A stretch of 64,000 nt of DNA from Takakia lepidozioides. Taxonomy: Eukaryota > Plantae > Bryophyta. The stretch lies in contig CM060732.1 in assembly GCA_030704615.1 (NCBI GenBank), positions 71,610,001-71,674,000 of the forward strand. Reading direction: 5' to 3'. The position numbers were made by a program, and so were the translations under genes. The notes beneath the pieces were generated by a model, which worked only from the letters and a program-made list of their open reading frames with translations, made no database searches and was not told where the DNA came from. Shown piece by piece: positions 25,027 to 61,539 of this stretch (position 1 is its first letter; every line of letters begins with the position of its first letter).

Positions 25027-26478
25027 GAGCTTTAGGGTAGGGTTTACGAACGTCGACTTCCGTGCGTCGCCGCTGCATAAACATCAAAACAAATAAGACG
25101 ATATAACAAGGAGAGGGACTAAGAGAGATGTACTGGTTAGCAGTTTTGGGAGAAGTGCTATGGGTCAGGACATGGTTCAGCAGGATACTGAATCTCACCG
25201 AGCTGGTCCTTGGGTATCAGGGATCTAAAATTTGCCTGAGAAATTGACAGAATAGTTCGGCATAGCCAGCAACAATCAGTTGCAGGATTGTCTGGGCAAG
25301 CTCTCAAACTTGAGGGCCTGATGATACCCCAACACTAAATCTCCAGTTCCCCGTAGTGCAAATTGGCCATACATGCCCGGAATTGCGGTCACAGGGTACA
25401 ACAAGAGGTGAAAATCGATCACAATAAGAGAGGATGCTTACGATCGAGACTCGTGGTCAGCTTGAAGACACGGCCGAGAGGCGTGGGAGCCATGGCCGCT
25501 TCTTCTCTCACCCCAACGAAACCCTTGCAAAAACAACACACTCATTCAGCGATGGCCATGGCGATGCTCTGAAACCCTCTCCTCCCTTCCTGGATCTTCG
25601 CCAGCCATTTCTCCTGTTTAACAGCCGTCGATGGCCTCAAAGATGGACGTCACAACCCTGATCAATTTTCCACCCAATAGTATAATCGCTTCTGTGGCCC
25701 CGTGACACTATCAAACTGAGCTACCAGCTGCTATCGTTCTGTTTAGAGTTTGTGCAGGGTTTGTGCAGCGAAGTGTAGTCAGGTGTGCTAACTAGGTAGC
25801 TTGAAGTGAATTGCGTGTGGGTTTAGTGGAGGTGGCCTCACCTGTAACAGACATGGGAAACAGTTCATTCTCAGGACTACTGAGGCAGGTTGCTCTCAAG
25901 GACTGTACTCTGGTTGTCAATGTAAGTTGGCCGCAGTTCACACACAAGTATGTGGGCACCATGTTGTTGGGGATATGTCCTTTTTGTGTCCTGCAGTTTA
26001 GGTCCCATTGTCAGTGTGAAAAAGGTCGGAATACTCATTTGGTGGTCACGTACAGATGCGATTTGACCCTTTATCTCTTGCTTGGGAGGGTGGGCAGCTC
26101 CCAGGATGCAAAGAGGAGGTTGACAGCTGCATCAGTCAATCTGTTTCGGCACAATTTATAAGAGATTAGATGCTACATTCTACGAGTGTGATTTATTGGA
26201 CTTGGCACCCCGACTTTTAGGCAAACTCCTACGTGGACGATGTTATCTTGCAAATTACTGAGGTCTGTTTTCTGTGTATCTTTCTCACTCCCTGACATAG
26301 TCTTTCTTGGTCAAACCTATAGATGGATATAGATTTTGAGTGCGTTCACGGTATGTTGGAGAGAGGAGAAGGCACCTTCAGAAAACGTGGAGTACAGGTT
26401 CTTTTCCAAGCGCGGTTCAGAGAGAGACGAAAGAAATCGATATGGTATTCTCTTTCCTTCTATAATCACTGCGAAATC

Positions 26479-29205
26479 ATGGGCCAATTGTCCAGCACTC
26501 ATAGGCAAAGCCCTCTTCTTCTCTTTCACTTGCTCGTGCTGATGGTGGTCACATCGATGCTGATTCCGCTTCGGGCTCAAGAAGATACCTTTCACAGGGT
26601 GACTCAGCTGGCTTCAGTCCAAGCTCTAAAGCTTGAAAACACCCCTGAAACTCTTCAGTCTGCCGTCAAACTCACAGTCCTGAATGACCGTTCTTCGAGT
26701 TCTGTACACAAAGCTGGTGGCTACATTTGTGATGTCTCAGTATTTGGAGCTGTTGGAAATGGAAAGGTTCTTGACACCTCTTCCATACAGTCTTCGATCG
26801 ATACATGCGCAGGCAGGGGAGGGGGAATAGTCCACGTTCCTCCAGGGATCTATCTAACAGCAACACTCTTTCTGAAATCCAACATCACATTACGGATAGA
26901 CCAAGGGGCGACAATTCTTGCCAGCCCTGATCAGCAGAACTTCCCGCCGGCACAGTCCCAATGGTACACCATCATTGCAGAAAACGCAGAGAATGTGGAG
27001 ATCACAGGAGGAGGAGTGGTGGATGGGCAAGGACTGAAATATGTGGTTGAGTTCGCAGAGAAGAAGAATGTAATGGTGAGTTGGAATGAGACTGGTGCTT
27101 GCAGCGGCGACGAATGCCGACCGCGATTGATTGGCTTTATCAATTGCAAGAATGTACATGTCTGGAACATTCTGCTTCAGGAACCTGCGTACTGGTGGTA
27201 GGTTTTCGTTTCTATCCTTTTTTTTTTTTTTTCCTTCTCTCTCTCTCTCTCTCTCTCGTTCTTTCTCCAATACTCAATTTCAATGCAAGCGTAGACCTGC
27301 TTACCTGAATAGTGAGGTAAGGCAGCAAGAACAACTTAATTAATATGCCTGACCTTTGGCCATCGTGAAGAGGCGTGATGATTGCCCACTACTGGAGCGC
27401 ATACCACACACGCAAACACACACTCTGTGTCCCTCTCTCTCTCAGTCCTCCAAGCACCAATAACTACCAGACTTTCGGGGGGAGAATATGAAAACTGCAA
27501 AGTTTCTGGCCTTTCCTCTCATTGTGCCCAGCCTCTTTGAAGCATTGGTCTAACGCCAAAATAGGGGACTTCCCTTGGCACAACGATCCAAGAAATACGC
27601 AGGTTCTACTCTATTCTGGCATTACACAGCACATAGATGCTTGTCTGAAGGGCTTTCTAGAGTTTTCTTTGGAAAGCCCAAACTAATTGTTTATATCAAG
27701 GTAAGTCACACTACTGGAGTGAGCCCCTTCACAAAGGTAGTGCCTATTCCCTATGTTGCTGTCCAATCTGAGTGTGTGGGGTCTATGGCCACAAGGCCAC
27801 GTCTTATTCATACATTCTATTCTGGCAGTTGGATAGGTCTGGACCTTTTTTTTGCAGTTCTAATTAAGCTTCGTAAGGTTGAGGGCTGGACTGTGAACAT
27901 AGTACTTTTATGAACACATGAATGATGCCTCCTTCGCAGCTTACATATCCTCGATTCCGACGGTGTTTCAATACATGACCTCTCAATCTATGGTGACTTC
28001 AACACACCAAACACCGATGGCATTGACATACAATCCTCCAACAACACTGTGATCAAAGCTTGTCATATTGACACTGGAGATGATGCCATCTGTCCAAAGA
28101 CAACCTCAGGACCCCTGTATAACTTAACAGTCACAGACTGCTGGATAAGGACAAAATCGTCTGCAGTGAAGCTTGGGAGTGACAGCCGGCAAGACTTTCA
28201 TTCGCTCCACTTTGAGCGTCTTACTATTGTAGACTCTCACAGAGGCCTAGGGCTGCAGCTTCGGGATTCAGGTGCCTTCCTTACTCTTTTCTTTGACTTT
28301 CCCTGCTGTTTTGTTCTAAACCACCTTGAAGCATATTTCTAGTGAATGGCTCTTAGGGATGGTTCACTGAGTATGCAGAGACCCGTGACACTCAAGAGAG
28401 CGGTCAACAACCTATGGATAAAGATCAAACATAACAAAGGCCATTTTTCCTCCCTCCATCAATACATCGCGGTGGTCTTGGACTCTGAGGCAGTTGCTTA
28501 AATGCAAGCATACTCTGAGCCTGGTACCCCTCTGGTGCGGAGCCACTTATTTTTTTGGATTTTGGTTAGCTGGGGAAGGGGCATTCGATTATGAAATGAA
28601 ATCCTCGCAATATAGCGTAGCCCCTAACTGTGTCACACACTAAGACATGCTAAGCATCTGAGTCAAAGACAAAGGTGGACACAGACTGAAATCGCAATCT
28701 CTTACCCCTTCATCAAACAGGGAATATCTCCAATGTCACTTTTGCCAACATTCAGATGAGCACCCGCTACTACGATCCCTCCTGGTGGGGCCTAGGTGAA
28801 CCCATCTATGTAACCGCCTGCAACCGGGATCCTTCCTCTAAGGTAGGCTCTATTCGCAATGTGCGCTTCATCAATATCACTGCCACATCAGAGAATGGCA
28901 TCTTCCTTGCAGGCTCTAATGACAGCCATTTGCAAGGACTTGAATTCACTAACATAAGCATAAAACTTGTGAGATCGACAAACTATACAGGTGGACTCCA
29001 TGATCACAGGCCTGGCTGTCAGGGCCTAGTTGAGCACCGGATGTCAGGAGTTTTCATGGAGTACATTGAGAACATGTCGATGGAAGATGTTGAGTTGAGC
29101 TGGAGTCAGAATGCATTGCCAGACTGGGGGTTGCCACTGGATTTCACCTCATCCACTGTCTATTCTCTGGATTTAGAAGACTTTCAATCCTCCTACCCCA
29201 GCTGA
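26479..29205 (+). CDS. Glycoside hydrolase family 28 (polygalacturonase-like) protein; exons 26479-27197, 27940-28271, 28721-29205
   Basis: Signal-peptide-like N-terminus; FGAVGNG..DT..IQSSID, GGGVVDGQG, PNTDGID and TGDDAICPK motifs; GT-AG junctions that preserve frame. Confidence 0.93.
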
Positions 29206-30170: not shown

Positions 30171-31784
30171 TCAAAGTGTTGAGGTCTGATACAGATGGGC
30201 GGGCAAGCGTGGCTTAGCGAAGGCAAGCAATGGCTTCAGCTTCGGTGTGGTCAGCCCTTCACTTTCTTCCATATCGATATCGGTAGCGCCTTTCTCCAGC
30301 AAAGGGGTCCAGTCGAAGCAGTGAATCAAGCTCGCAAGGCCCAACATTACTATTGTCGTTCCCAGAGATCCACCGGGGCAGCCTCGGCGGCCAGCACTGA
30401 AAGGGATGATACGCATCTTTGTGTCCCTGATATCGACACGCTCTGCATCATGAGTAGACTTTTCGCCGCCGTCTTCCATCCATCTCTCAGGTTTGAATTC
30501 TTCTACTTCCTCCCACAATCTAGGATTGCGCCCAAGGCCCCACCCACTGATCAATACCTGTGTGTCTTTCGGGATGATGTAGCCTCCCAGCTCACTATCC
30601 TCCATAGCTAAGTGCGGTATAAGAAATGCTCCAGGGGGGTGCATACGAAATGTCTCCTTCACCACGCACTCCAAGTATTTCAGCTTCCCCAAATCTGACT
30701 CAAGGACCATCCGTTCACACCCTACCACATGGTCGATTTCACTTTGTACTTTGCGAAGCAAGTCAGGGTGCCTGATCATCTCCGCCATAGCCCATTCGTT
30801 CGTGACAGCTGAGGTGTCAGTCCCTGCTGCTATCATATCTTGCACCAAGGCCTTTACAGTTTGGTCGCTAAGGTGTTCCTCACCATTCTCCCCGGGGAGG
30901 GATAATAAGACGTCCACAAAATCGGTTGCAGCGTTAGGGTCAGTGACCTCCTTAGACTTCTTTCTGTGCTCCTCAACAATTGACGAGTGGAAGGCGTCCA
31001 TGCTCTTCTCCACTTCTATCATCTTCTTCTCGTGGCCTCCCAGGTCTAACCACCTTAGAAACGGCAGAAAGTCTCCAATAGGAAAGACACCCAATAGCCG
31101 AAACACCTCGTGTGTTATCTTTTTGAAATCTTGGGCATCACCTTGTCTCGCGTTTCCTGCACCAAAGTACCGCTTTCCCAGAAGCATGCGTGTCATCACG
31201 TTCATAGACAGTGCTCCCAACGCGTCCTTGAGATCGGAAGCCTCGCCCTTAGAAGCGTCAGTCCAAACCGACTGTACCAAGTGACCCGCCTCTTCTGTGC
31301 GCTCCTTTCTGAACCCCTCCAGACGTTTGGGAGTCAAAAGCTCCATCATGCAGATGCGGCGCCCATTCTTCCAATGATTTCCATAGGGGGCCATCGCCAC
31401 ATCACCACCACCATAAGCCAGACGATCCACCGCGATTTTCTTTGGTCGGGATGCAAAGACATGGTCCTTAGACTTCAGAATCTCCTTGATGATATCTGGA
31501 TCGTCTATTACAACTGTACGCACTGAACCTAGACGTAGATATATTATGGGCCCAAATCTCCTATGTAGAGCATAGATATTATGATGGGGGAGGCGTCCCA
31601 AGTTCAGAAGATTGCCAATCACAGGCCATCCGGATGGCCCTGGAGGTAACAGCTTGCCTTTGTAGTATCGTCTGCGCTGTAGATAATTTTTCAACAAGCG
31701 TGCCACCAATGATAACACAATCAGCCAGAAAGCAACTAACACGATCCTTTCAAACTGTTCGAGAAATTGTCCCACGATGTCCAT
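30171..31784 (-). CDS. CYP703: Cytochrome P450 CYP703 family (sporopollenin fatty-acid in-chain hydroxylase), single exon
   Basis: LPPGP hinge; LAYGGGDVAMAP, RRICMMELLTPKRLE, DFVDVLLSLPGENG and QDMIAAGTDTSAVTNEWAMAE recalled as CYP703 signatures; ETFR; PFSAGRRGCPG heme motif. First ATG at 31784. Confidence 0.93.
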   Translation of the reverse strand: MDIVGQFLEQFERIVLVAFWLIVLSLVARLLKNYLQRRRYYKGKLLPPGPSGWPVIGNLLNLGRLPHHNIYALHRRFGPIIYLRLGSVRTVVIDDPDIIKEILKSKDHVFASRPKKIAVDRLAYGGGDVAMAPYGNHWKNGRRICMMELLTPKRLEGFRKERTEEAGHLVQSVWTDASKGEASDLKDALGALSMNVMTRMLLGKRYFGAGNARQGDAQDFKKITHEVFRLLGVFPIGDFLPFLRWLDLGGHEKKMIEVEKSMDAFHSSIVEEHRKKSKEVTDPNAATDFVDVLLSLPGENGEEHLSDQTVKALVQDMIAAGTDTSAVTNEWAMAEMIRHPDLLRKVQSEIDHVVGCERMVLESDLGKLKYLECVVKETFRMHPPGAFLIPHLAMEDSELGGYIIPKDTQVLISGWGLGRNPRLWEEVEEFKPERWMEDGGEKSTHDAERVDIRDTKMRIIPFSAGRRGCPGGSLGTTIVMLGLASLIHCFDWTPLLEKGATDIDMEESEGLTTPKLKPLLAFAKPRLPAHLYQTSTL

Positions 31785-33545
31785 CTCGTCGTCTTCCTTC
31801 CTATCAGACAAGAATGAGCTGCACGAAAACAGGAACTAAATCTCAGGCAGGAATGAGCTGCTGCACCAAGACAGGAACTAATATCAGACAGGAATGAGCT
31901 GAAAGAAGACAGGAACAAGGAGAATCTTTAGTACGTAGGTGTGTATCAATGCGAAAACTTTAGCAGGGTTGTGAGAGCTCAAAGGGGAGCTTCCGCAAAC
32001 AAATGTTATTCTGTGGGTTTGCAGTTTGCAGGTGGGCTTTTATACGCAGTAGATCGCACACCAAAATAGATACACTTTTGGCCCAAAAGTTGGCTACTCT
32101 TTTACCTCAAAATAGATTTTCTTCTAAGAATACTGTTTTTTTTTTATAAAATATTTAAAGAAAGGGAAACACCTGGGAGCGACGGAGCGACACTGCTTTT
32201 ATCTTCTTTTTCATAGAAGTACTCTGGTTCTTTTTCTTTTTCTTTTTCTTTTTCATTTCTTTTCCACGGAAAAGACTCGTTTTTATTAAGCTTTTTAGAA
32301 AAAATTTAAGTTATCTAGAGGGGCAATGTCGTCGATTAACATGAGCCAATTTTTGGATGTATGGATGGATGTGGGGAAAATAAACCTCCTTTATGAGCCT
32401 AGGAGGCATTACAGGTGGAGAGCCCGAGCCCTAAGGTAGAGAGACAGATGACAGGGGTTTGAACCCCAAATCCCCATGCCAATGCACGAGTGTCTTACAA
32501 GACCGGGCCACAACCCCGATGCGCTAAATATTGATGTACTTGTAATGCCGCCAATAGCCAGAAAGGGGGTTTATTTCAGTGTTGGGCGGGTCCGGGTTTT
32601 GACCCCGGGTACCCGGCGGGTTAGGATCATGGTTACCCGGACTTGCACCCGGACCCGTGCTATCAACAAAAACCCCTACCCTGACCCTGGTTTTAGATCC
32701 CCGGAACCGGGCCCGCCTCCTGGGTCCATAACCCATTAAACCCGCTACCCCGCGGGCCAGAGTAGCGGATGAGGGTCCGTGTCTTAATTTCAGGTTGGGC
32801 ATGCGGGGTCCACCTTAGATGTGGTAGGCTCTGCAATGTGTCGAGCTGTGAAGCCTTAAAACAAGCCTGAAGCATATACTCCTTTCCTCTCAAGAAGCAA
32901 GGTTTCACAATAAAAGGGCAAGCGGAAAGAGCAGGCGACTTGCGAGAGGAGGATCAAACACACGGATCTGACACAAAGCAGCTCTCATCCAAAGCTTGTA
33001 CACTCACTTCACATATACACTAACACCTGAGTACACCGCCCTGACCTTGTGTCAGGGCGCCGTCTTTATACAAAAGACCTAGCTTCAGTTGCCCGCCGCG
33101 TGGCAAGGCGTCACAAGCCAAAACCCACGGCACCGTTTAGACACCCTAGATTAGATGAAGGGCCAGGATGTGGCCACCAACCAAAACTAACCCTAACCTA
33201 GATATCATTGTAACGGTTTAACGGCATTATACGCCAAAAATTTATACTATGGATGTGTATTGTCGTTTTGGATGAAACGGGTCATTTCTAGCCTAGGATA
33301 GGATGGGCCATCACATCTGTGAAGCCTACCCCCCACGAAAAATCCTGAGCTCCGCGAAGGAAAACAAATAATAAGAAAATATCACCCTCCACTGCTGGGT
33401 GAAAAACCTACCAACGGAAAACCTGGCACCTGCAAGTTGGGCCGAGGACAAAACCCTTGACTAGGAAAACCGTGCAGGGAGTACAGATGGTGATATACCA
33501 TGAAACTAAAATGTTTCTAAGTCCTAGAGAGGTCAAGTCATAGGA

Positions 33546-48229: not shown

Positions 48230-51200
48230 ATAAATCAACCTTGCGTTGACGCAAGGTTGATTGATGGGGTTGCAGCATAGTCCAAAATGTGTCCCGGAAC
48301 CCTCTGCCGAACCCACAAAATGCCTTGCGTTGACGCAAGGTCGTTTTGGGGGATTCAAGCAATCTACTTCCCCTACCTTGCGCTTCATGAACTGGATTTC
48401 AGAGGCTGCGAATGCACATAAGAGGCACCCAAATCAACCTCGCGTCAACGCAAGGTTGATTCGAGGGCTGCATACGTTTGGTTTTGTACCCAAAACATAC
48501 ACCTTGGAGCTCGGATATGGACCTTGCGTTGACGCAACCTTCTTTTCCTCTGATATTTGGTCTGTGCTTCAAATCTGGGCTGCACGACCTGCATGACCTC
48601 TTCTATTCATTCCAGTGAGGTCGACATCAATCTTGCGTTGATGCAAGGTTGATGTGGGGCTCCCGGTTCCACATTGAACAGAAAGAAAAAGCAAAAGGCA
48701 AATGAGGGTTGATTATAACCTCTAGTTTCTTCTTCGCAACACTTGATGATGCTTCAGCAATGTTCGTCTTTTCCACGGGGTCTGGAGGCAACATGCTTCC
48801 AAGCAGATCCGGGTGGTGGGAAATAGTGGCAAACGGCATCGTGTCCGCCCTTGGTTCTTCTCTTGCAGCGCTTCATCTTGAGCCCAGCTGACTTCTTCGT
48901 CGTCCCCTCCCTCAATTGCAGGTTGTTCTTCGATCGCCTCCGGCACCGCTTCAAGACCTTCCTCTCAAAATTGTGGTTGCAGATTCGGGTGTAGCCCTTC
49001 ATCTTCATCTCCGTCTTGCCCATTCGCAGTTCCCGTCAAGGTGCCTTCCTCATCCTCTCCTTAGCGCGTGCCCTTTGCTTGTTTGATGTGAAATAGAGTG
49101 TTTGTCGGCGCCTTCTTCTCCCACATGATGACGTGACCATCTCGGCAGAATCCAGGGTTGCAGTGAGGAGAAGGAGAAGAAGGAAAAAAATGGCACTGCG
49201 GGAGGTTCACCGGCGGTCCATCTGCGCCAAGATGATCGCTGGAAACGTCCTGACCGCCACATGCACAGTCCACATGCATGGTCGACACGTGTCCAATCTG
49301 CCGTTAACAATACCGCCGGAAAGCATTTAATCATCATCCACCAAATTTCGTCCGGGTCGACCTCTCATCCGCAAATTTGATTCTGGGGTACCCACTTTTG
49401 GGGTGTTTCGGAGGATTGTGCAGTTGGTACAGTTGTACAGCTATTCAGTTGCCATTAAACATTGAGTGGAAATGGGCACCTCGTCTGCCCTCTCTGACAC
49501 AAGAGCCAATTGGCGGCTATGTCATTGAAAATTTTGGTTGGGGGTTTGGATGTCCAAGACAATGGTGGGGCAGATGTGGAAAAATAGTTGGCTTCTTTCT
49601 TCGGTGTGGCATTTGGGCTGACATCCTCCACTCCGCATTTGGGCACTTTTTGACCATACATTGGTTCGCATGTCCACACATTTGTTTGATGTGTCAATCC
49701 GCATTTAAAGACCTATATGTGAAAGCGACAGCTACAATTGTGTGTAAGGACGTCTTACATATAGCCCAGAAATTCCACTTCAGTACAGCCTGCACTCAAA
49801 AGCAACATTGGACTTTGGACTGTGTGCTTTGAAGCAACATTAACAGATGGCCTCCCAGGCCTTGGGCTCCCTGGACGCAGACTTCTTCAGCGAGGACCAT
49901 CCGGTGCCATTTTTGTACGAGGTGGATGATGATGGTTTTGCACTGGTGCATGAACACGTGCTCGCGACGCAGTTTCGGTTGGAGACTGGCACTCTATTCC
50001 TCGAGAGGGAAGTGTACGATGCCAATGGAAATTTGCTCAAGTACGCCTTCCAGAAACCTTCGCAGACTGCACAAACCACACAATGGAGAGTGCCTCCAGG
50101 CAGATACAGGGTGTTGAGTGCTCCTCAATGACAGTCTGCAGGATCATTCCTTCATTAACGTTACTAGACTCTTGGAACGGCAGCATCAGTGGCCCAGGAG
50201 AAAACACCCGTGGTTGTTAAGAAGGAGTCTAGTAACGTTAACACAGTCTTGGAGCTTTTAGACTCCTCCTCTGAGGACGCTTGTGAAATACCGCCAGTGG
50301 ATCAGCCATGTCCAGTTCAGGAAGCAGATGTAGAAGAGATCACCAGTGTCATTCCCAAACTGAAAGCCATGGGTGGGATGGCAGGATTCAAGAGTGAGTT
50401 GAGGGGGATTGACTGGAGCACTTTCAATGTTCAGCGTGTGACATTCTTGCCAGAATCATTTGGTGGTAATATTGTTTTCGAGCTGCCTCCTCCGGGTCGA
50501 GTGGGGGGCATTTCCAGTCTCATGGAAGGAATGGACAAAAATCACGATGGACACCCTTGGTGCCGCACAAAAACCTCCAATATTCACAACCATGACAACC
50601 TCATATTCAGGAGAACAGTCTGTAATGGGCACCTGAAATGCGAGAACACGAAGTGCAGACACTTTGCACTGTCAGGTCTGCAAAACCAAAGCGAATGGGA
50701 TGGTGTCACTGAGAATCCATTCAAGCCTGGGGTGACACCACCATACAGTAACACTGTTGTGTGCAAGTTTTGTAGGCTACCACCTTGCTGCCTTGCATTG
50801 TGTGGTGCCAGGGCCCAGAATGTACTATGTAGTGCATCGATTCAAAACCCTGACTAGAGCCTGTGTCCATTTCGGTTTTTACAACCACCCTCTGTCCAAG
50901 GGGGATTACAGAGAGAGTGTCGAGACAGTCTCGCGTCTGATAAGGCAAGAGTTGGATACCAATCCAACTGGAACCACTTCTGCAATTGCCATGGGGGCGA
51001 GCAAGTCTTTTTTGGAAAGCCGTATTCTATGTGCATCAGATTCGGTTGGAGGAAAACTGGAGGGACCGGCTTTGGACATTGTTCTGGACCATTTTTCAAC
51101 ATTGACTTCTCCAAACATTAGGAATCAAGTGAACGCTTTGAGAATGGGCTCTGGGAGCCGAGGTTATATGGACAATATTATGGATTTGAAGAAAAGGAGC

Positions 51201-51885
51201 ATGTACGACTACATCCAAGACAGCGTCTTCCTGGGGCAAGGAGCGAGGAAAGTATTCTTGTTTAAACTGTCCACAAAAGGTGAGGGCAGCAGAGTCAGCC
51301 TGGTTCAACGTATGCAGAAGGGTGGCGATGTTGGCAACTGTTTATTTTTTATCACGTGAAGAGGTTTAAAGACTAGACCACAATGGCATGTCATGTTTAC
51401 GACCCTGTGTACCAGCGAGTCATGACAATTGCAGTGTGTGACATGCAGTCAGAGGACACCGAATCACAGTAGCTCATGTGGGAAGCTCTCATTCGCGTTA
51501 TGGCCTCCAATGGTCTCCCATCTCCAAATTTTGTTGGTTTCATGGCCGACAGTGCTCAAGCGAACTTCAACGCTGTCCGCATTGTGTTCGGGACGAGAGA
51601 TCCAAAAGTTCCAATGCCTGGAAGAGAACATACGTGTCTTTTCCATTGGACACAATCCCTGGACAAACACACAAAGACAGACATCAAGCCGGATATGCAG
51701 AGTATGCATCGTCAACTGTGCAAACAGTACAAAGACGCCAAAACTATGGGGGAAGCGAATACATTGTTCCAGACAATTCGTGCCTGGTGGTACTCATCTG
51801 GAGCGGCATCGGAAGACAACATGAGGGCACTGGAAGACTAGTTTGCATTTTGGCACTTCCGTTACCGACAGTGGGGAGCGGCCAT
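48230..51885 (+). mobile_element. MULE-like transposon, second copy: upstream palindromes plus transposase pseudogene (49847-51885)
   Basis: Zn-finger region RRTVCNGHLKC...CKFC...ACVHFGFYNHP; DDE core TTMACHVYD...FMADSAQANFNAV...CLFHW (MULE D...CxxH); repeated CCTTGCGTTGACGCAAGG at 48239-48650. Confidence 0.78.
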
Positions 51886-53899
51886 GACTTGTTTTTAGAT
51901 CATGAAAAGCGGTTCAGCCTAGAGTGCAGGGATTCGTGCATAAGCCTATCCAAAGCAGATAGAGTGCAAAGGCGAACATGTTGCAGGTTTGCAATGGATA
52001 GAGAGGCAGTCAGCCTGTATTGAATGGTGGCGTTGCATAGCTCAACGCTATGGCAACCAAGTTTGGGCTTCTAGTGTGAAGCGGAGGAGATGCTGGCCAC
52101 AAGTAGGCGAACTGGTGGTCTTCTTCATCTGTAGGCCGAGTTAAGGAGCTGCAGGAATGTGGGCTGCACATGGGAAGCTAGCGTGTTGCAGGTTGGAGAT
52201 GATATGATCAGCTCCCGAAACTAGTTGTTGCGGGTAGATGAGGAGCAGCCGAATGGTGGAGCTGCGAGGGGATGCATCGCAGCCTGTTGGGAGCTTCAGC
52301 TCCAAGCTCATGAAGAGGTATGAGTGAAGAGAGGGGGCTGGTCCATCTTGTGTGCAAGTCAATGCACTTGTGAAACATGTGCTTGAGTTGGAAGTTTCAA
52401 TCTGAAACTCTAGCACTGTAAAGGCTCTTGGAGTGGCAAGAGTGGGGCTGGAAGGGCAGCAACTAGGTGTCCTAGAGCCAGGGAATGTGCAGTAGAACTG
52501 CAGCTACACCAAGGTTGTAAAGGTGTGTATTTTCAGATTTGTTTTTGTGAGCTTCATGAAGAAAATGGAGCTAGTTGGGCAGCATATAGCTTACTTGTTG
52601 AGTTGGGGGCACTTCTAGGCCATGAGAGCTCAGGAGTGCAGGGTGACAGGGCTGATGGCTCTGCAGAAGCCATAGCTCAGCGACAGCAGGTGCAAGAGCA
52701 AACCCCAGCTCGGGGAGAGATTTCAAAAAATAAAAGGACCGCCAGTGCGGCCGCCAATCTTGTTTTTTTTTTAAATAAATTGAAGCGACCGCCATAATGT
52801 ATTTGCCACCGCCATCGTGTCTGCTTAAATGACAGTATTTTACCTGGTACTATTTTTACCAGAATATTCCCCGAACCTGACGTGATGGAGGTCCCGTCAG
52901 CGTCAGGTCTGACGTGACCTGATGGACGGACGTGATGCTGATAACCGAGCCTTGAGGCCCTTGAGGGAAGCATAGTGGGGACACCATTTAGAGGGGAGAC
53001 TTGAGGACGAGTAGGGAGGCCGGAGTTGGTCAAGGTATGAAGAGCACCTAGGAAAAGGGCCACCTTGAGCACCATTCTACCGAGCTAGTAGAGCATCCCG
53101 AGCTCCACCATCTGATGTAAGGGTGATCCACCACCACCCCCTCTTTTAATTGCTTTGAAATTATTTCATTTGATTGATTTTCACTAAGCCGAGAGCTCGC
53201 AATGCTAGGGGCTAGTGTCTATGTGTGTGCATGAAGAAAAACTAACCCTCTTATGGCAAGAGGATGCTTTGACATGATCAAAAGGGAAGCATTGTGATTT
53301 ACCCCAAAGGGATAGACCTTGGGAGCATTATATAGTGGCTTGAGAGCCCATAGCTTGTATGATTTATGAAGCTAGTTGTTGATTTTCAGATCTGGAAAAT
53401 ATGGCGCTCCCACGTTCCCACCAGGTTATCATCATGTTCCCGCGCTCCCCTGGACATTCCAAAGGGATCAACGAGATCTTCTGGAGATTCCCCACCTTTG
53501 GGAATTTTTTATATTTCTTTAATTATTTCATTTTTTCTGAAGGTGAAAACGCATTGTTGTCAGAAGAAAAATTGGTTACGAATGTCTAACCTTCTCTGTT
53601 GCATCCACACGGGTTGTGGCTAGATGATGCAGCTTCTCGAGTGTCAACGTGGGCTTAAGAGCGCGGGAGTAGTGCTTCCCCACCTCCACCAGAAAGTTGG
53701 CACCAAGGGTGGGATCAGCAATGGCCACGTACTTCACCATCCGCAACTTGTACTTGATGCGAGCCTTTGCCTCGGTAGCTTGGAGATACGATTCCAGCCC
53801 ATGAAGACCCACAGCAGGCCATGGTTATGAGTTCCATAAGCAGAACTCTCAACCTGTTGGGCACCTATTTCAAGACTCATGTTCCTTCCACTCAGTTGG

Positions 53900-55757: not shown

Positions 55758-55939
55758 AACCGTGAGGTTACGGCTTTTTCAAAGGGGGAGGGATAATATT
55801 AGAGGGTTGTCTGGGACTTAGACAGTTTTACGGGTTCTGTGGGGTACCCTTACTTTTGCGCAGACTTAAGGGTAGTAGACTTAAATAGACACAAGCCTTA
55901 GGGGTGGTAGACAGGCTCACACAGTCAATAGTCATAGGC

Positions 55940-56036
55940 TTACACAGCCTGACATAGCCTGTCACAGTCAGACACAACCTGACACAACCCGACATAGCCA
56001 GTCACAACCTGACACAACCTGGCACAGCCCGTCACA
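55940..56036. repeat. 10-bp tandem repeat (GACACAACCT-like) in presumed LTR
   Basis: gacatagcct gtcacagtca gacacaacct gacacaaccc gacatagcca gtcacaacct... Confidence 0.8.
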
Positions 56037-56536
56037 TTTTTCACAGGGAACTGTCATCACGGGAGGGAACGACTGTGTGGGAACAAAATCTGCAGAGGGA
56101 ACGATCTGTTGATGCTTGATACATGCAAGCTGTAGAGATGTACTGTAGAGCAGAATAGAGACACCATGGCTTCGGCCTGATACATGATAGATATTAATCT
56201 GATTCCTATTTCATACGTCTCACAATGTGTAGAGAGACCTGAGTGAAGCTGTGGAATAAATGCTTAAGTAGATGGAACATGGTAGATTGCAGAAGCAATT
56301 TGATACTTAAACCTAGGCAGTAAGGTAACTTACTAAACATGAATGCAAGAAGGAACCGATATAAGGAAGCACCCCATGATACATTAGCTGTAGGTCATGA
56401 CTGATTGTTCTGAGCGGGAGGGGTACTTGGAGATATCCAACTCTTCTATCTTGGAGTTTCCACCTCGGATAACGAAGGGATGGGTGAGTAAAAGCCGCTC
56501 AACAGAGATCTCCCGTCAATAAAAATCTACCAACAC

Positions 56537-59174
56537 ACACATTCAACCCATCATCAATGAATCAATCTGGGAATTACTTCAAGATTCTGGCTTGCCATAC
56601 TTATCAAGTAAACCACAAGATCTTATATAACATTGCCAATGTTACACAAAGTCTTGTGGTTTACATGGTAAGTTTGATCATGCACTCTTGAAAACCAATT
56701 AATCATTGTGGTTAATCACCTGGGTTATTAATAGTGTTCTGTGTCAGACTGGTCATCTTAAACAGACATAAATGAATGGTCATTACGAGCACGGGAGACC
56801 TCCCGTCAAAGAGAGACGGGATATCTTCCAGGACCGCAACAACGGGAGGTCTCCCTGCATAGTAAAGCCGGGAGATCTCTCATCAATCCACCTCTGCCAG
56901 CAAAACAATTTCAACCCATTATCATTTGAAGCAAGGATAGAGCAGAGACATTCCTGCATGTGCATGGCCATAGTTACAAAGTGATACCCAAGATGTTAGA
57001 TAACATCGCCAGTGAGTTAACTAAAGTCTTGTGTATCACTTTGTAAGAATACAGACGCATTCAGAGAAGTCCTGCAATGAATGTAGCTAATCACGTGGGT
57101 ATCAGTAGTGTTTGTGAAACAGTAGTCTTACGCGAGGTTCATCTCAAATGATTGTTCAAATGAATGGTCAAAAGGATATTCACTGGACTTCTGCCAACTA
57201 ACACTTTCAACCATTCATCATTCTTAGCAGTGACAAATCAGGCTTGTGATGGCCAGACTTACATGAAAGCCACAAAAGATTTTACATTACATCGCCAGTG
57301 TGTAATGTAAAGACTTGTGTCACCCTCTGTAAGTATTTGGCTGCACTCCAAATGTCCCGTCATGAATGTTACTAATCACTTGGGTATCAGTAGCGTGTCG
57401 TGCCAGCCAAGTCCTACTCGAGGTTCATCTTGAAATACTTGAATGGTCAATGGACCGGAAGGGAGAAGGTTTCAATGATCCAAGTCCTACGAACTGGATA
57501 CAGTGAAAGACACAGATGAACCTGGTCAAAGAAGGAAGGGAGGTCTCCCGTCAAAGGAGGTCGAAAAATGGCTTGGAAAATATGGTGACTTCCTACGCAC
57601 ACTTTCAACCCATTATCTGAAGCAATATCAGAGCTCTCACAATCTGGGAATTACTTCAAGTTGTCAGTCTGGCCATACTTATCAAGTTAAAGATCTTATC
57701 CAACATTGCCAGTGTTGCATAAAGTCTTGTGGTTTACAAAGTAAGTATGTTCAGGCACTCTTGAAATCCCCGTAATGAATGTGATTAATCCAAGGGGGGG
57801 GTCACTATATGTATTTTTTTCATATCACATGCGTACAAAGGTATATTTATACTAGGCTATATTTTTAAAATTTTGCATTTTCTTCCACCCTATCTTTAGG
57901 TAATATTGTAAAACCCTTTGTTTTCTAACACCCTATTTTTCTTTATAATTTTCTTTTGCAACAATTAATTAGACCCTATTTTAAATTATCATTTTAAATA
58001 ATTGTAAAATTTCAAAGCATCTACACAAACAAGTACATTCCATATAACATAAGTCAAATGCCGGACCCAAGAAAAAATTTAATTTTCATTAGTCACGAAC
58101 TCATTCAAAACCGCAACATCACTTGGATATAAAGAGTACAAGTCTTGAGATGGTTCAAATGCCATAGTCACTGTTGAGATTATGGTATTAACATCAATCC
58201 ATTGTGTATCACTGGAATCATATTTGAACTTCAGGTGACCTATACCTGATTTCATCCTGATGGATTAAAGCTGGATGCAATATGAGAAACTTCACAAGGA
58301 TGGATACAGTAGATAAAACCCTTTATTACATTAATTTTTAAAGTAAAATTCTGGATTTTTTGTGACCATTTTTTTTAAAAAATTGGGTGAAAGGATATTG
58401 CCTTACCATATTTTATAAGTAAAAAATTTCTAAAATTTACCTCAAAAAAAAATTGCACCCTATATTTGTTCTCACGTGGTTTTGTAAATACGGGGAGTGA
58501 CCCCCCCAAGGGTTAATCACCTGGGTATCACTAGTGTCCAAATTTATCTTAATTTACCGCCGGAGGTCTCCCGCTAAACGGACGACGGGAGATCTCCCGC
58601 CAAAGGATCGACGAAGCCAATACACAATTTCAACCCATCATCGTTTGAAGCAATGACATTTGCTGCAAAAGCAGAGACATACTTCTTGCATGTGCATTGC
58701 CATACTTACAGAGTGATTTGCAAGATCTTAGATAACATCGCCAGTGTGTTACCTAAAGTCTTGTTAAATCACTTTGTAAGAATACGGACGCATTTGGGAA
58801 AGTCCTCGAATAAATGCTTGTAATCATCTGGGTATCAGTATTGATTCGTGTCAGTCTAGTTTTGCGCGATGTTGATCTCAAACAGAGATATGAATTATCA
58901 AATGGAGGACGGGAGGTTATTGTCGGAGGTTCATATTAAGACATAGATAAGAATGATAACTAGAGGACGGGAGGTCTCCCGCCAAACGGACGACGGGAGA
59001 TCTCTCGTCAATGGACTTCTGTCCAGAAACACTTTCAACCCATCATCACTTGAAGCAATGACACAACATTCACAAGCAGAGACATACTTCCCGTATGTGC
59101 ATTGCCATACTTACAAAGTGATCTACAAGATCTTAGGTAACATCGCCAGTGTGTTACCTAAAGTCTTGTGTATC
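56537..59174 (-). ncRNA. Array of six structured-RNA-like units (rod hairpin with double kink-turn base); units 56537-56737, 56904-57113, 57201-57398, 57598-58537 (interrupted), 58622-58843, 59029-59174 (truncated)
   Basis: Conserved + strand blocks TTCAACCCATCATC ... CATACTTAC ... AAGATCTT ... CATCGCCAGTG ... AAAGTCTTG ... GTAAG ... TAATCACCTGGGTATCAGTAGTG; stems differ between units but stay paired. Strand is inferred from the k-turn motifs. Confidence 0.7.
57789..58512. mobile_element. Non-autonomous TTAA-targeting (piggyBac-like) element inserted in array unit 4
   Basis: TTAA at 57785-57788 and 58513-58516; TIRs GGGGGGGTCACT..GTATTT / AAATAC..AGTGACCCCCCC; right end AAGGG-TTAA. Removing it restores GTGATTAATCACCTGGG as in sister units. 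Confidence 0.82.
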
Positions 59175-59595
59175 TTCCGTCAAGGTATTCCCAGCTCTTG
59201 AGGATTTCCATCTCCAAGTCGTCTTCGACAACAGGGACCCTGAATCCCAGCCGAATCGCGAATCCCATCAGATCACTACTCAGACTCATGGCATCAACGG
59301 AGAACCCAAATACCTTCTCCCCTTTCTGGCCGTTCTCGTGGATGAACACAACAAGGGTAACTATGTTATTCCTCACCGAGTCCTCAATTTCAATTCCCAA
59401 CACATCACAACACTGAAGTGTTTTCTTTTCCGCACTGATCTGGTAACGGAAGATGGCTTTCTCTGGGTTCGGGGAGTCCGCAACGTCAATACCCCAGTAG
59501 TCGATACTCATCTTTAGCTCGTAGAAGCCCTGATGCTTTATTGTGAATCCTTCAAGGTGTGGGTATATGAAGGAACCGGCAATGTCAGCGCTCAT
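59158..59595 (-). CDS. Hypothetical protein (~145 aa from MSADIAG), 3' end fused to array unit 6
   Basis: Open ORF 59158-59673 with globular protein-like composition; last codons run into the hairpin. No recognisable motif. Confidence 0.45.
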   Translation of the reverse strand: MSADIAGSFIYPHLEGFTIKHQGFYELKMSIDYWGIDVADSPNPEKAIFRYQISAEKKTLQCCDVLGIEIEDSVRNNIVTLVVFIHENGQKGEKVFGFSVDAMSLSSDLMGFAIRLGFRVPVVEDDLEMEILKSWEYLDGRYTRL

Positions 59596-59996
59596 TACAA
59601 CGATTGATTCCTTTGGAATCTGTGTTCTGGCAGCACAATCAACATAAGAACACCCCGTTAATATAAACACCAAAAAACAACTAACATAACGGTCTTTCAG
59701 AACCGTATCGACGTATGTCTCAATTCAGGGACGGGAGATCTCCCGTGATCAGCAAAGAACAAGACCACCAACATGGATAATTCACATTGTCAATATGACA
59801 AATGCGATACCAGAATAAAAGGACGGGAGATCTCCCGTGATCAACACAGCACATAAACAACAACTTGGAGGGTTCAGAACGATAATAGAAATAATAAGTA
59901 CTTTATAAATAAAAAACGCAGGGGTGCTTCAGGTACACTAGAGATGTACTTGAATACAAAGACGGGAGACCTCCCATGATCAGCTCCACCTACCAT

Positions 59997-60662
59997 CTAT
60001 GGTTTGCTAGAATCTACGTCAAGAAATTGCCCTATGGTCACACCACAATGCATTGGGCTATCTAGCCGGGTCTGATATGCTGTGCGGATCTCTGCTCTCA
60101 GGTTATCCTGCTTAGGATCCCTTCCGGGTGTCGCCGGGAATATTTAGGACTCCAAGAGTCGTTGTCCGAAACCCAATCAGGGAATATCTTCGAGATTTCG
60201 TCGATTTCGACTGAGTTCGACGCCTGTGCACTCAGGGAATGTGATCCGGGAATATCTACAAACTCTACTAAATCTTGTTTCTCAATATACCCTCCTGGTG
60301 TGTACGTGTGCTCTGCAGGGGTGTATACTGGTGAATCTGCTGGAATATACATGTGCTCTGCAGGTGTGTATACTGGTGAATCTGCTGGGATGTACTCGAC
60401 AGGGGTGTATTCCGGTGAATCTGCTGGGATGTACTCGGCAGGGGTGTATTCTGGTGTATTCTGGTGAATCTTCTGGGAAGTACTCAGGAGGGGTATGGTT
60501 TTCTCGGACGTACTCTAGTGGACCGTAGGCAGCTTCTCCTAGGGTATATTCCATTTGGAAAGGAGGAGCGGAATCCGGTATGACTGGAGTATTGTTGACT
60601 GGAGAATTATTGACTGGAGTATTGTTCTTCTTGCATTTCCCTTGTTCAATGTTTGTCCGCAT
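59997..60662 (-). pseudogene. Frameshifted ORF with SPEYTP / YIPADSP tandem peptide repeats
   Basis: ORFs 60282-60662 and 60098-60352 join through a frameshift; 33-39-bp DNA repeats at 60290-60480. Confidence 0.5.
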
Positions 60663-60802
60663 CGAAAAGTGCTTGGATTTCAGACATCAGCGTCTCATCT
60701 TCTAGGTAATGACACCTTGGCCAACGTTTTGGCTGACACCCTAACAGAAATTCAGCGTATGCAGTGCCTGATTCCTGACATATTCTCCTTTTAAAAAAGA
60801 AC

Positions 60803-61200
60803 ATGATAAGGGAGTGAATCAATGTCAGTGACACCTTTCCGTGTGAACCTTTTACCGATGGACAGAACTGACTCTCTCACGCTCTTCGACCCTTCGATGT
60901 AAATCTCAAGGGAGGTCTCCCGTGACATTTCTATCCCGTGAGAATAATCACTGGAGATTAAGCACAGGAGACCTCCCCTGAGAATGTCCACGGGAGACCA
61001 GAGATGATAAGGGAGTGAATCAATGTCAGTAACAACTTTCCGTGTGACCTTTTTTTACCGATGGACAGAACTGACTCTCTCACGCTTTTCGACCCTACGA
61101 TGTAAATCTCGGGGGAGGTCTCCCGTGAGATTTCTATCCCATGAGATTAGTCACTGGAGATTAACCACGGGAGACCTCCCCTGAGAATGTCCACGGGAGA
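60803..61200. repeat. Tandem direct repeat, 2 x ~200 bp (60803-60997, 61004-61200)
   Basis: Both copies begin ATGATAAGGGAGTGAATCAATGTCAGT and end GAGAATGTCCACGGGAGA. Confidence 0.92.
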
Positions 61201-61539
61201 TCTCCCCTGTGAAGCACGGGAGACCATACCAGGAACCAAATATATAGCGAAACCCACAGATTTCATCCATATTTGGAGACTTCATCCATAGTTTAAGTTT
61301 TATTTGGTTTTATTTTGCGATAATATGCATGTAAAAACTGGGAATTTTCGACATAATATTTTATTTCATTTTTTTAGGTTGAAATTTGGTGAAAACTCGC
61401 CAATAAAAAAAAACATCGGCGGATCGGATGCGGACGGATCGGACGGTTCAGATGGCATCGACGTGGTCAGCATACAGGGAGCGCACGTTCGGGTACGTCA
61501 GAGTACAGGAGGCCCCCCGTGCCAGTATTTATTGCTTGT

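Follow-up and report, generated by a model that had tools for sequence, protein, structure and literature searches.

On the minus strand of the window, by which we mean the whole 64-kb stretch of Takakia lepidozioides DNA that was analysed, a diverged tandem array of six units (A-F, pairwise identity 60-83%) runs from position 59177 to position 56537, each unit being about 250 bases long and forming a long imperfect hairpin with two stacked kink-turns (k-turns) at its base. Comparison of the units supports selection on a k-turn-type motif in minus-strand orientation, and our preferred reading, to which we give a probability of about 0.5, is that they would be transcribed from the minus strand as hairpin RNAs clamped by Snu13, which might serve as small-RNA precursors or as silencing decoys. 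The motif belongs to a known kind and is met in a new context; the evidence is computational and comes from the single array copy of the window, which is decayed and largely dead. In the plan of a unit, the 5' arm consists of a stem, a 3-nt bulge, GAU, a 5-nt helix strand, a second 3-nt bulge and GAUUA; the long central hairpin comes next, and then the 3' arm with UGAUGA, the helix strand, UGA, A and the stem. The units and the one insertion among them are as follows; no seventh unit was found in the 64-kb window.

59029 to 59177, minus strand: unit A, a long hairpin with an intact 3' k-turn arm (59048-59029) and no 5' arm.
58624 to 58844, minus strand: unit B, 5' arm 58844-58821 and 3' arm 58643-58624, a fully intact double k-turn.
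57599 to 58537, minus strand: unit C, 5' arm 58537-58514 and 3' arm 57618-57599, with a G>A change at 2n, split by an insertion.
57789 to 58512, unstranded: secondary insertion in unit C, 724 bp, with a TTAA target duplication and short G/C-rich terminal inverted repeats.
57201 to 57396, minus strand: unit D, 5' arm 57396-57373 and 3' arm 57220-57201, with 2/5 pairs of the shared helix broken.
56905 to 57111, minus strand: unit E, 5' arm 57111-57088 and 3' arm 56924-56905, with a G>A change at 2n.
56537 to 56737, minus strand: unit F, 5' arm 56737-56713 (G>A at 1b and an extra A) and 3' arm 56556-56537.

The original prediction held that every unit is closed by two stacked k-turns. The unit-end motifs that it described lie at the positions given for them on the minus strand of the array, but complete closure is seen in B, the sole unit of the six to keep all G.A, U.U and shared-helix cells; A is without its 5' arm, C is split, and D, E and F carry lesions. 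The lesions of E include a C.U mismatch in the outer stem, and the 3' arm of F has its G.A and U.U cells intact. The hairpin of unit A is fused directly to the upstream open reading frame (ORF) with no 5' arm between them, and a joint 59173->58812 found in another copy suggests that unit A is complete in other copies. The 724-bp insertion, a piggyBac-like non-autonomous element, sits in the GAUUAA of unit C, and its empty site is seen in runs X1 and X5; the same element is present in high copy in X1, and a piece of it lies on a contig of X7 that was guessed to be RNA.

In both internal loops, a 3-nt bulge with U at its end is followed by G.A, A.G and U.U, the fit to a k-turn that had been pointed out for them. 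Of the 87 k-turn core cells in the six units, 84 are retained; majority identity in the unit interiors is 80% (Fisher p 3e-5, which is indicative only, the cells being non-independent). All three lost core cells are G-to-A changes (2n in C and E, 1b in F), the change to be expected if methylated cytosines of the opposite strand had decayed, which is the probable cause. Variation is otherwise found at the first two bases of the bulge, a freedom that the k-turn consensus permits; the second bulge of the 5' arms reads GAU, GGU, AGU, CGU and GGU, just the variation originally reported. On its non-bulged side, beside the C helix, the outer turn carries an additional A. Position 3b:3n is U.U in 10/10 pairs, 4b:4n is A:U in the outer turn and U:A in the inner turn of all units and never G:C, and -1b:-1n is not C:G; the description "box C/D-like" therefore holds for the U.U pair at 3b:3n but not for 4b:4n. 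Both bulges are carried by one strand, and the k-turns have a helix in common, the NC helix of one doubling as the C helix of its neighbour, which is the arrangement that defines a double k-turn.

A descriptor of the head-to-tail double k-turn, run over the 64 kb, returned one strict and three relaxed matches, all of them in the array and all on the minus strand, compared with means of 0.0 strict and 0.17 relaxed matches in 100 order-1 Markov resamplings of the strand. Read on the plus strand, the loops are without G.A pairs. The fold energy is the same on the plus and minus strands, and the G.U and A.C cells of the central stem show no strand preference (7 against 11), so that the RNA is oriented by the asymmetry of the motif and not by folding energy. 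The predicted minus-strand orientation and selection on a k-turn-type motif are supported by the minus-only descriptor matches, by the retention of the core, and by partition folding, which favours unit-closing arms.

The 5-bp shared helix is invariant and hence never covaries, and in the outer stem just one pair, that of unit B, is changed on both sides; the pairing of the k-turn helices is for these reasons argued from pattern. In the central hairpin, 6/21 pairs have two-sided changes, arranged about a C.A mismatch and a loop that are both fixed. Local hairpins of up to -5 kcal/mol compete for both strands of the inner turn, which would accordingly need protein to win. The probability of the unit-closing helix in partition folding is 0.80 in B, 0.77 in C, 0.29 in E and 0.96 in F, and in a three-way competition the unit-closing pairing wins in C, E and F, with spacer-closing at no more than 0.01 when both partners are available. 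Permutation ranks for the outer-stem energy are about 0.5 for unit-closing and 0.09-0.27 for spacer-closing pairing; those for the inner flanks are 0.57-0.86 and 0.89-0.98, respectively, so that the flanking stems leave the choice between the two undecided. The modelled folding favours arms that would each close their own hairpin. The fold z is -3.7 for unit B and -6.3 for unit F.

Two further features lie within the central hairpins:

A 59130-59110, B 58725-58705, D 57279-57258, E 56993-56973 and F 56620-56600, minus strand: candidate small-RNA segments with 5'-U, on the 3' arm of the hairpins.
59114, 58709, 57682, 57262, 56977 and 56604, minus strand: 5' splice-site motif resembling GUAAGUAU, in the same relative position in 6/6 hairpins.

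The candidate segments are 21 nt long in A, B, E and F and 22 nt in D, and combine near-invariant ends with a variable core that occurs in three covarying versions. They belong to a well-paired duplex of 20-22 nt with 2-4 unpaired positions, in a stable fold-back (z -3.7 to -6.3) whose lower stem has 11-12 bp and is followed by a loop; precursors processed from base to loop typically have a lower stem of ~15 nt (PMC3787264). The sequence pattern of the central hairpin resembles that of a microRNA scaffold whose guides change. The original prediction of an RNP rather than a plain pre-miRNA hence stays two-sided, because the putatively clamped hairpin itself holds a pre-miRNA-like duplex of 21-22 nt. 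The GUAAGUAU-like motif is paired with a U1-like strand inside the hairpin, and the read majority restores its G at 57682; a splice-site model was rejected, there being no conserved 3' splice site. Positions 1-18 of the unit E 21-mer (56993-56973) pair, with two G.U, to 31149-31129 (-), the sense strand of a CYP703A-like gene (ORF 30171-31811), at a penalty of 3.5 that was reached by 0/1000 shuffles; there being nothing to tie a target to the window, the match is probably chance.

One alternative is that there is no functional RNA at all, and that the units are DNA-level or neutral transposon repeats in which a k-turn look has been read into a few inherited copies. The common ancestry of the six units, the equal fold energy of the two strands, the unbiased G.U and A.C cells and the failure to find expression in small, RNA-guessed runs all agree with it; nevertheless we regard it as improbable, because two separate loops depart alike from a perfect inverted repeat in a way that is sensible on one strand only, the cores are far more conserved than the interiors, and the central stems covary. 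It is also improbable, in our judgement, that the arms pair across the spacers, a 3' arm joining the 5' arm of the unit that follows, to give backward-polarity k-turn RNAs that enclose the palindrome spacer, possibly within introns starting at the conserved GUAAGUAU. The outer stems E-left/D-right and F-left/E-right do beat the pairing within their own units, the E-F spacer taken alone closes with probability 0.94, majority letters at 56766 and 56769 repair the spacer stem, and the U1-complementary GUAAGUAU-like motif is present in every hairpin. Against this, the permutation ranks of these stems are non-significant and those of the inner flanks are high, spacer closing all but vanishes under competition, the spacers are the least conserved part of the array, and the introns would have no conserved 3' splice site.

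An unlikely reading, if a better one, is that of a polycistronic microRNA or hairpin-siRNA cassette. The terminal motif would then be just a conserved basal stem of irregular shape, or a single one of its two loops would be a true k-turn, and the inner strands would lie in local hairpins. This reading accounts for the well-paired 5'-U segments of 21-22 nt with their near-invariant ends, for a lower stem of 11-12 bp followed by a loop, and for the rival hairpins open to both inner strands. Ordinary MIRNA genes have their guide conserved rather than their scaffold; the array has the reverse pattern, a conserved scaffold and a variable candidate guide. Moreover, no Rfam microRNA match was obtained, the lower stem falls below the ~15 nt of base-to-loop processing (PMC3787264), and two identical G.A/A.G/U.U loops are left unexplained. 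Very improbable is a captured and amplified guide of box C/D type, in which the inner turn would supply box C/box D and the preceding 12-16 nt would guide modification or blocking of 18S rRNA near U1422 (L071 numbering). Unit B pairs over 12 nt (one G.U) with 18S, starting exactly at D-2, with a score equalled by 4/972 background 21-mers, and A, C and E match the same site more weakly than B; yet D and F no longer have the match, the extension in unit C disappears with the majority letter at 57629, and unanchored shuffles reach such a match in 1-38 of 60 trials. The boxes would read RUGAUUA (C) and AUGA (D), there is no C'/D', 4b:4n is not G:C, and Rfam gave no snoRNA match. As weak observations on the same subject, the stretches 59064-59049 and 58659-58644 (-), which precede the D-like box, are complementary to a conserved part of 18S, ~1419-1434 (L071). 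The only 18S references used were L045 and L071, two leaf-nodule symbiont assemblies whose sequence was taken as plant rDNA; eukaryotic 18S rDNA, a contamination, is contained in at least 102 bacterial or archaeal genome contigs, some of them from human-associated assemblies and possibly of human origin.

The preferred reading, Snu13-clamped hairpin RNAs, can be set out as follows. A multi-copy, probably Mutator-like moss element would carry a tandem cassette of RNA modules of ~250 nt, presumably transcribed from the minus strand, the base of each module being clamped by two head-to-tail k-turns that share a 5-bp helix. Two molecules of the host protein Snu13/15.5K are predicted to bind each module, and the pair would bend back the rod, protect the module from trimming and perhaps direct it to the nucleolus or Cajal bodies; no methylating snoRNP would be built, as 4b:4n is not G:C. 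The clamped hairpin may, speculatively, be a Dicer-like substrate that yields the 21-22-nt duplex with its diversified core or, just as speculatively, a decoy for RNA-silencing or splicing factors that aids the element against host silencing. According to published k-turn rules, U:U at 3b:3n together with a -1b:-1n pair other than C:G leads to protein-dependent folding (PMC5689011), and by extrapolation the same would be predicted here, which makes binding by Snu13/15.5K a reasonable prediction from those rules. A more far-reaching version, which we consider less likely than not, is that the transposon encodes its own array of stable RNP modules, each with two Snu13 on a double k-turn, in which a fixed scaffold carries a diversified core of 21-22 nt as a programmable source of small RNAs or as a decoy.

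The closest structural parallel is helix P12 of euryarchaeal RNase P, where a single helix serves one k-turn as NC helix and the following k-turn as C helix and two L7Ae are bound, and the authors of that work called for a search for further cases (PMC5499556). Like it, the array units have two head-to-tail k-turns at the base of a long hairpin, with a shared helix of 3 bp in RNase P and of U.U plus 5 bp here (PMC5499556); unlike the archaeal module, the present one lies in a plant repeat and is arrayed six times. RNase P RNA itself was rejected, no catalytic core being indicated by an Rfam match at either the gathering or the E-value threshold. With box C/D and other 15.5K-binding k-turn RNAs the units have in common the 3-nt bulge ending in U, the G.A/A.G pairs and the U.U pair (PMC5689011; bioRxiv 10.64898/2026.08.03.742641), and, as in box C/D RNAs, the bulged strand is 5' and the non-bulged strand 3' in the fold favoured for the array. 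In box C/D k-turns, both U:U at 3b:3n and G:C at 4b:4n are strongly conserved (PMC5689011), the G:C pair going with RUGAUGA as box C and CUGA as box D. A box C/D snoRNA has one terminal motif, C'/D' and open guides, with an antisense element of 10-21 nt before box D; the array has two turns stacked on each other, a long covarying hairpin in place of the guides, an added stem of 15-25 bp outside the motif, and no C'/D'. A box C/D snoRNA was rejected, since 4b:4n is not G:C in either turn, Rfam gave no match and no firm guide is present. Across Rfam as a whole, there was no match at the gathering score, and the E-value matches were weak hairpin matches. The cores of hammerhead, SRP and TIGR-type RNAs are absent, and these readings were discarded.

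U3 snoRNA has two Snu13 sites (C'/D and B/C) separated by a helix in an RNA of 200-250 nt, with the bulged strands on opposite strands and with boxes A/A'. The array units resemble it in having two putative Snu13 sites parted by a helix within an RNA of that size; U3 was rejected as an identity for want of an Rfam match, boxes A/A' and an snRNA promoter element, and because both bulges are on one strand. No USE-like snRNA promoter site was found upstream on the minus strand and no tRNA-like gene was detected; a bacterial promoter scan, not applicable here, stayed at chance level. For a hairpin RNA inside a plant DNA transposon with a proposed anti-silencing logic, the precedent is miR820 of rice CACTA transposons, a transposon-borne anti-silencing microRNA whose validated target is a silencing gene (PMC3459959); miR820 is one conserved microRNA, whereas the array has variable cores, a k-turn clamp and candidate products only (PMC3459959). 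In Arabidopsis, dicistronic snoRNA-microRNA genes place a k-turn RNA and a microRNA hairpin in one precursor, side by side and in host genes, whereas in the array the hairpin is nested in the k-turn clamp and belongs to a multi-copy element (PMC4660826). In the literature searched, which was incomplete, neither a transposon-encoded k-turn RNA nor a eukaryotic double k-turn was found, the head-to-tail double k-turn being described only for archaeal RNase P. If Snu13 binds, the array would be a natural eukaryotic double k-turn and would indicate that the core snoRNP/U4 protein is open to co-option by plant transposons; it would also add a route to the few transposon counter-silencing devices (miR820, VANDAL), and the RNP-module version would give a transposon RNA class with no described member in the literature searched.

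The array belongs to a larger element, other features of which lie mostly upstream of it on the minus strand:

56501 to 61208, unstranded: 16-bp palindrome in 18 copies, of which 16 have at most 3 mismatches and 2 are more degenerate, in the spacers and upstream.
59158 to 59595, minus strand: orphan ORF, 145 aa from ATG, truncated at the join with hairpin A.
60098 to 60700, minus strand: broken ORF, interrupted by stops and a frameshift, with Tyr-Pro-rich repeats.
60803 to 61200, unstranded: tandem duplication of 203 bp that holds palindrome pairs.
61480 to 61520, minus strand: probable terminus of the host element, as judged from a Mutator-like run of G and a depth step.

The two ORFs share the strand of the array, as the original prediction had pointed out. 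For the orphan ORF, no relatives were retrieved by word search, full HMMER, Atlas, Pfam, exact look-up or fold search; its predicted structure is beta-rich and of low confidence (pLDDT 45), and this poor model gives no sign of an L7Ae fold, so any binder would be the host Snu13. The one piece of the broken ORF that was searched had no homolog; its Tyr-x-Pro repeats (60100-60530, minus strand) loosely recall the RNA polymerase II CTD, and its frameshift is marked by a 10-bp duplication. The palindromes include five pairs 26 bp apart, do not occur elsewhere in the window, and are, from their sequence and layout, probably DNA-binding sites of the host element. Some Plavaka/Mutator elements, including those of red algae, combine ParB-like accessory genes with inverted-repeat arrays, according to the passages searched of a recent study (bioRxiv 10.1101/2025.02.11.637652). 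As far as those passages go, the present element is similar in having an element-specific palindrome array in a DNA transposon and a G-rich end that is also Mutator-like, and differs in that a ParB gene and a transposase are absent from the fragment; RNA hairpins are unmentioned in them (bioRxiv 10.1101/2025.02.11.637652). Mutator-like transposons are marked by two terminal inverted repeats, a 9-bp target duplication and a transposase; here one G-rich end near 61520 was seen, with no partner terminus in the window and no transposase in the fragment.

The DNA run X1 covers 56500-61520 with many variant contigs, at a summed depth of 130-670 outside the insertion and of down to ~21 in single contigs, a depth that is not copy number. 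Joints in X1 imply rearranged unit orders, and its majority letters repair lesions seen here, such as those of hairpin C at 57682, where a G is restored, and at 57689, where five bases are. The variant contigs, the empty insertion site, the joints and the repairing letters make the array a decayed member of a multi-copy family, and the region is probably a Mutator-like multi-copy element, as far as its sequence features indicate. At ~56504 the element is cut by a very high-copy repeat (55900-56504, X1 summed depth >200,000), which is also present on RNA-guessed contigs of X6 and X7. Among the listed RNA runs none holds the units, and the contigs of two small runs, whose RNA status is guessed, leave them uncovered, so that this absence is a weak sign of silence. 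A pattern scan of metagenomes gave 43 matches, judged to be chance and 0 of them with a partner arm or a palindrome, and a scan of viral contigs gave nothing.

The window is land-plant DNA, with PPR-like repeats, a Gypsy element and an intact CYP703A-like P450 that is ~55% identical to seed-plant proteins. A decayed GCM-MULE-like transposase region, identified by eye with no Pfam match, occupies 48230-48660 and 49800-52900; it has its own palindrome, different from that of the array, in about five copies upstream, and the GCM-MULE (~49800-52900) is an element separate from the array. A 116-bp tandem array fills positions 1-992, with an internal palindrome that resembles one at 48230-48660, and a glycoside hydrolase family 28-like gene, recognised by a weak Pfam match, lies at 26323-28800 on the plus strand.
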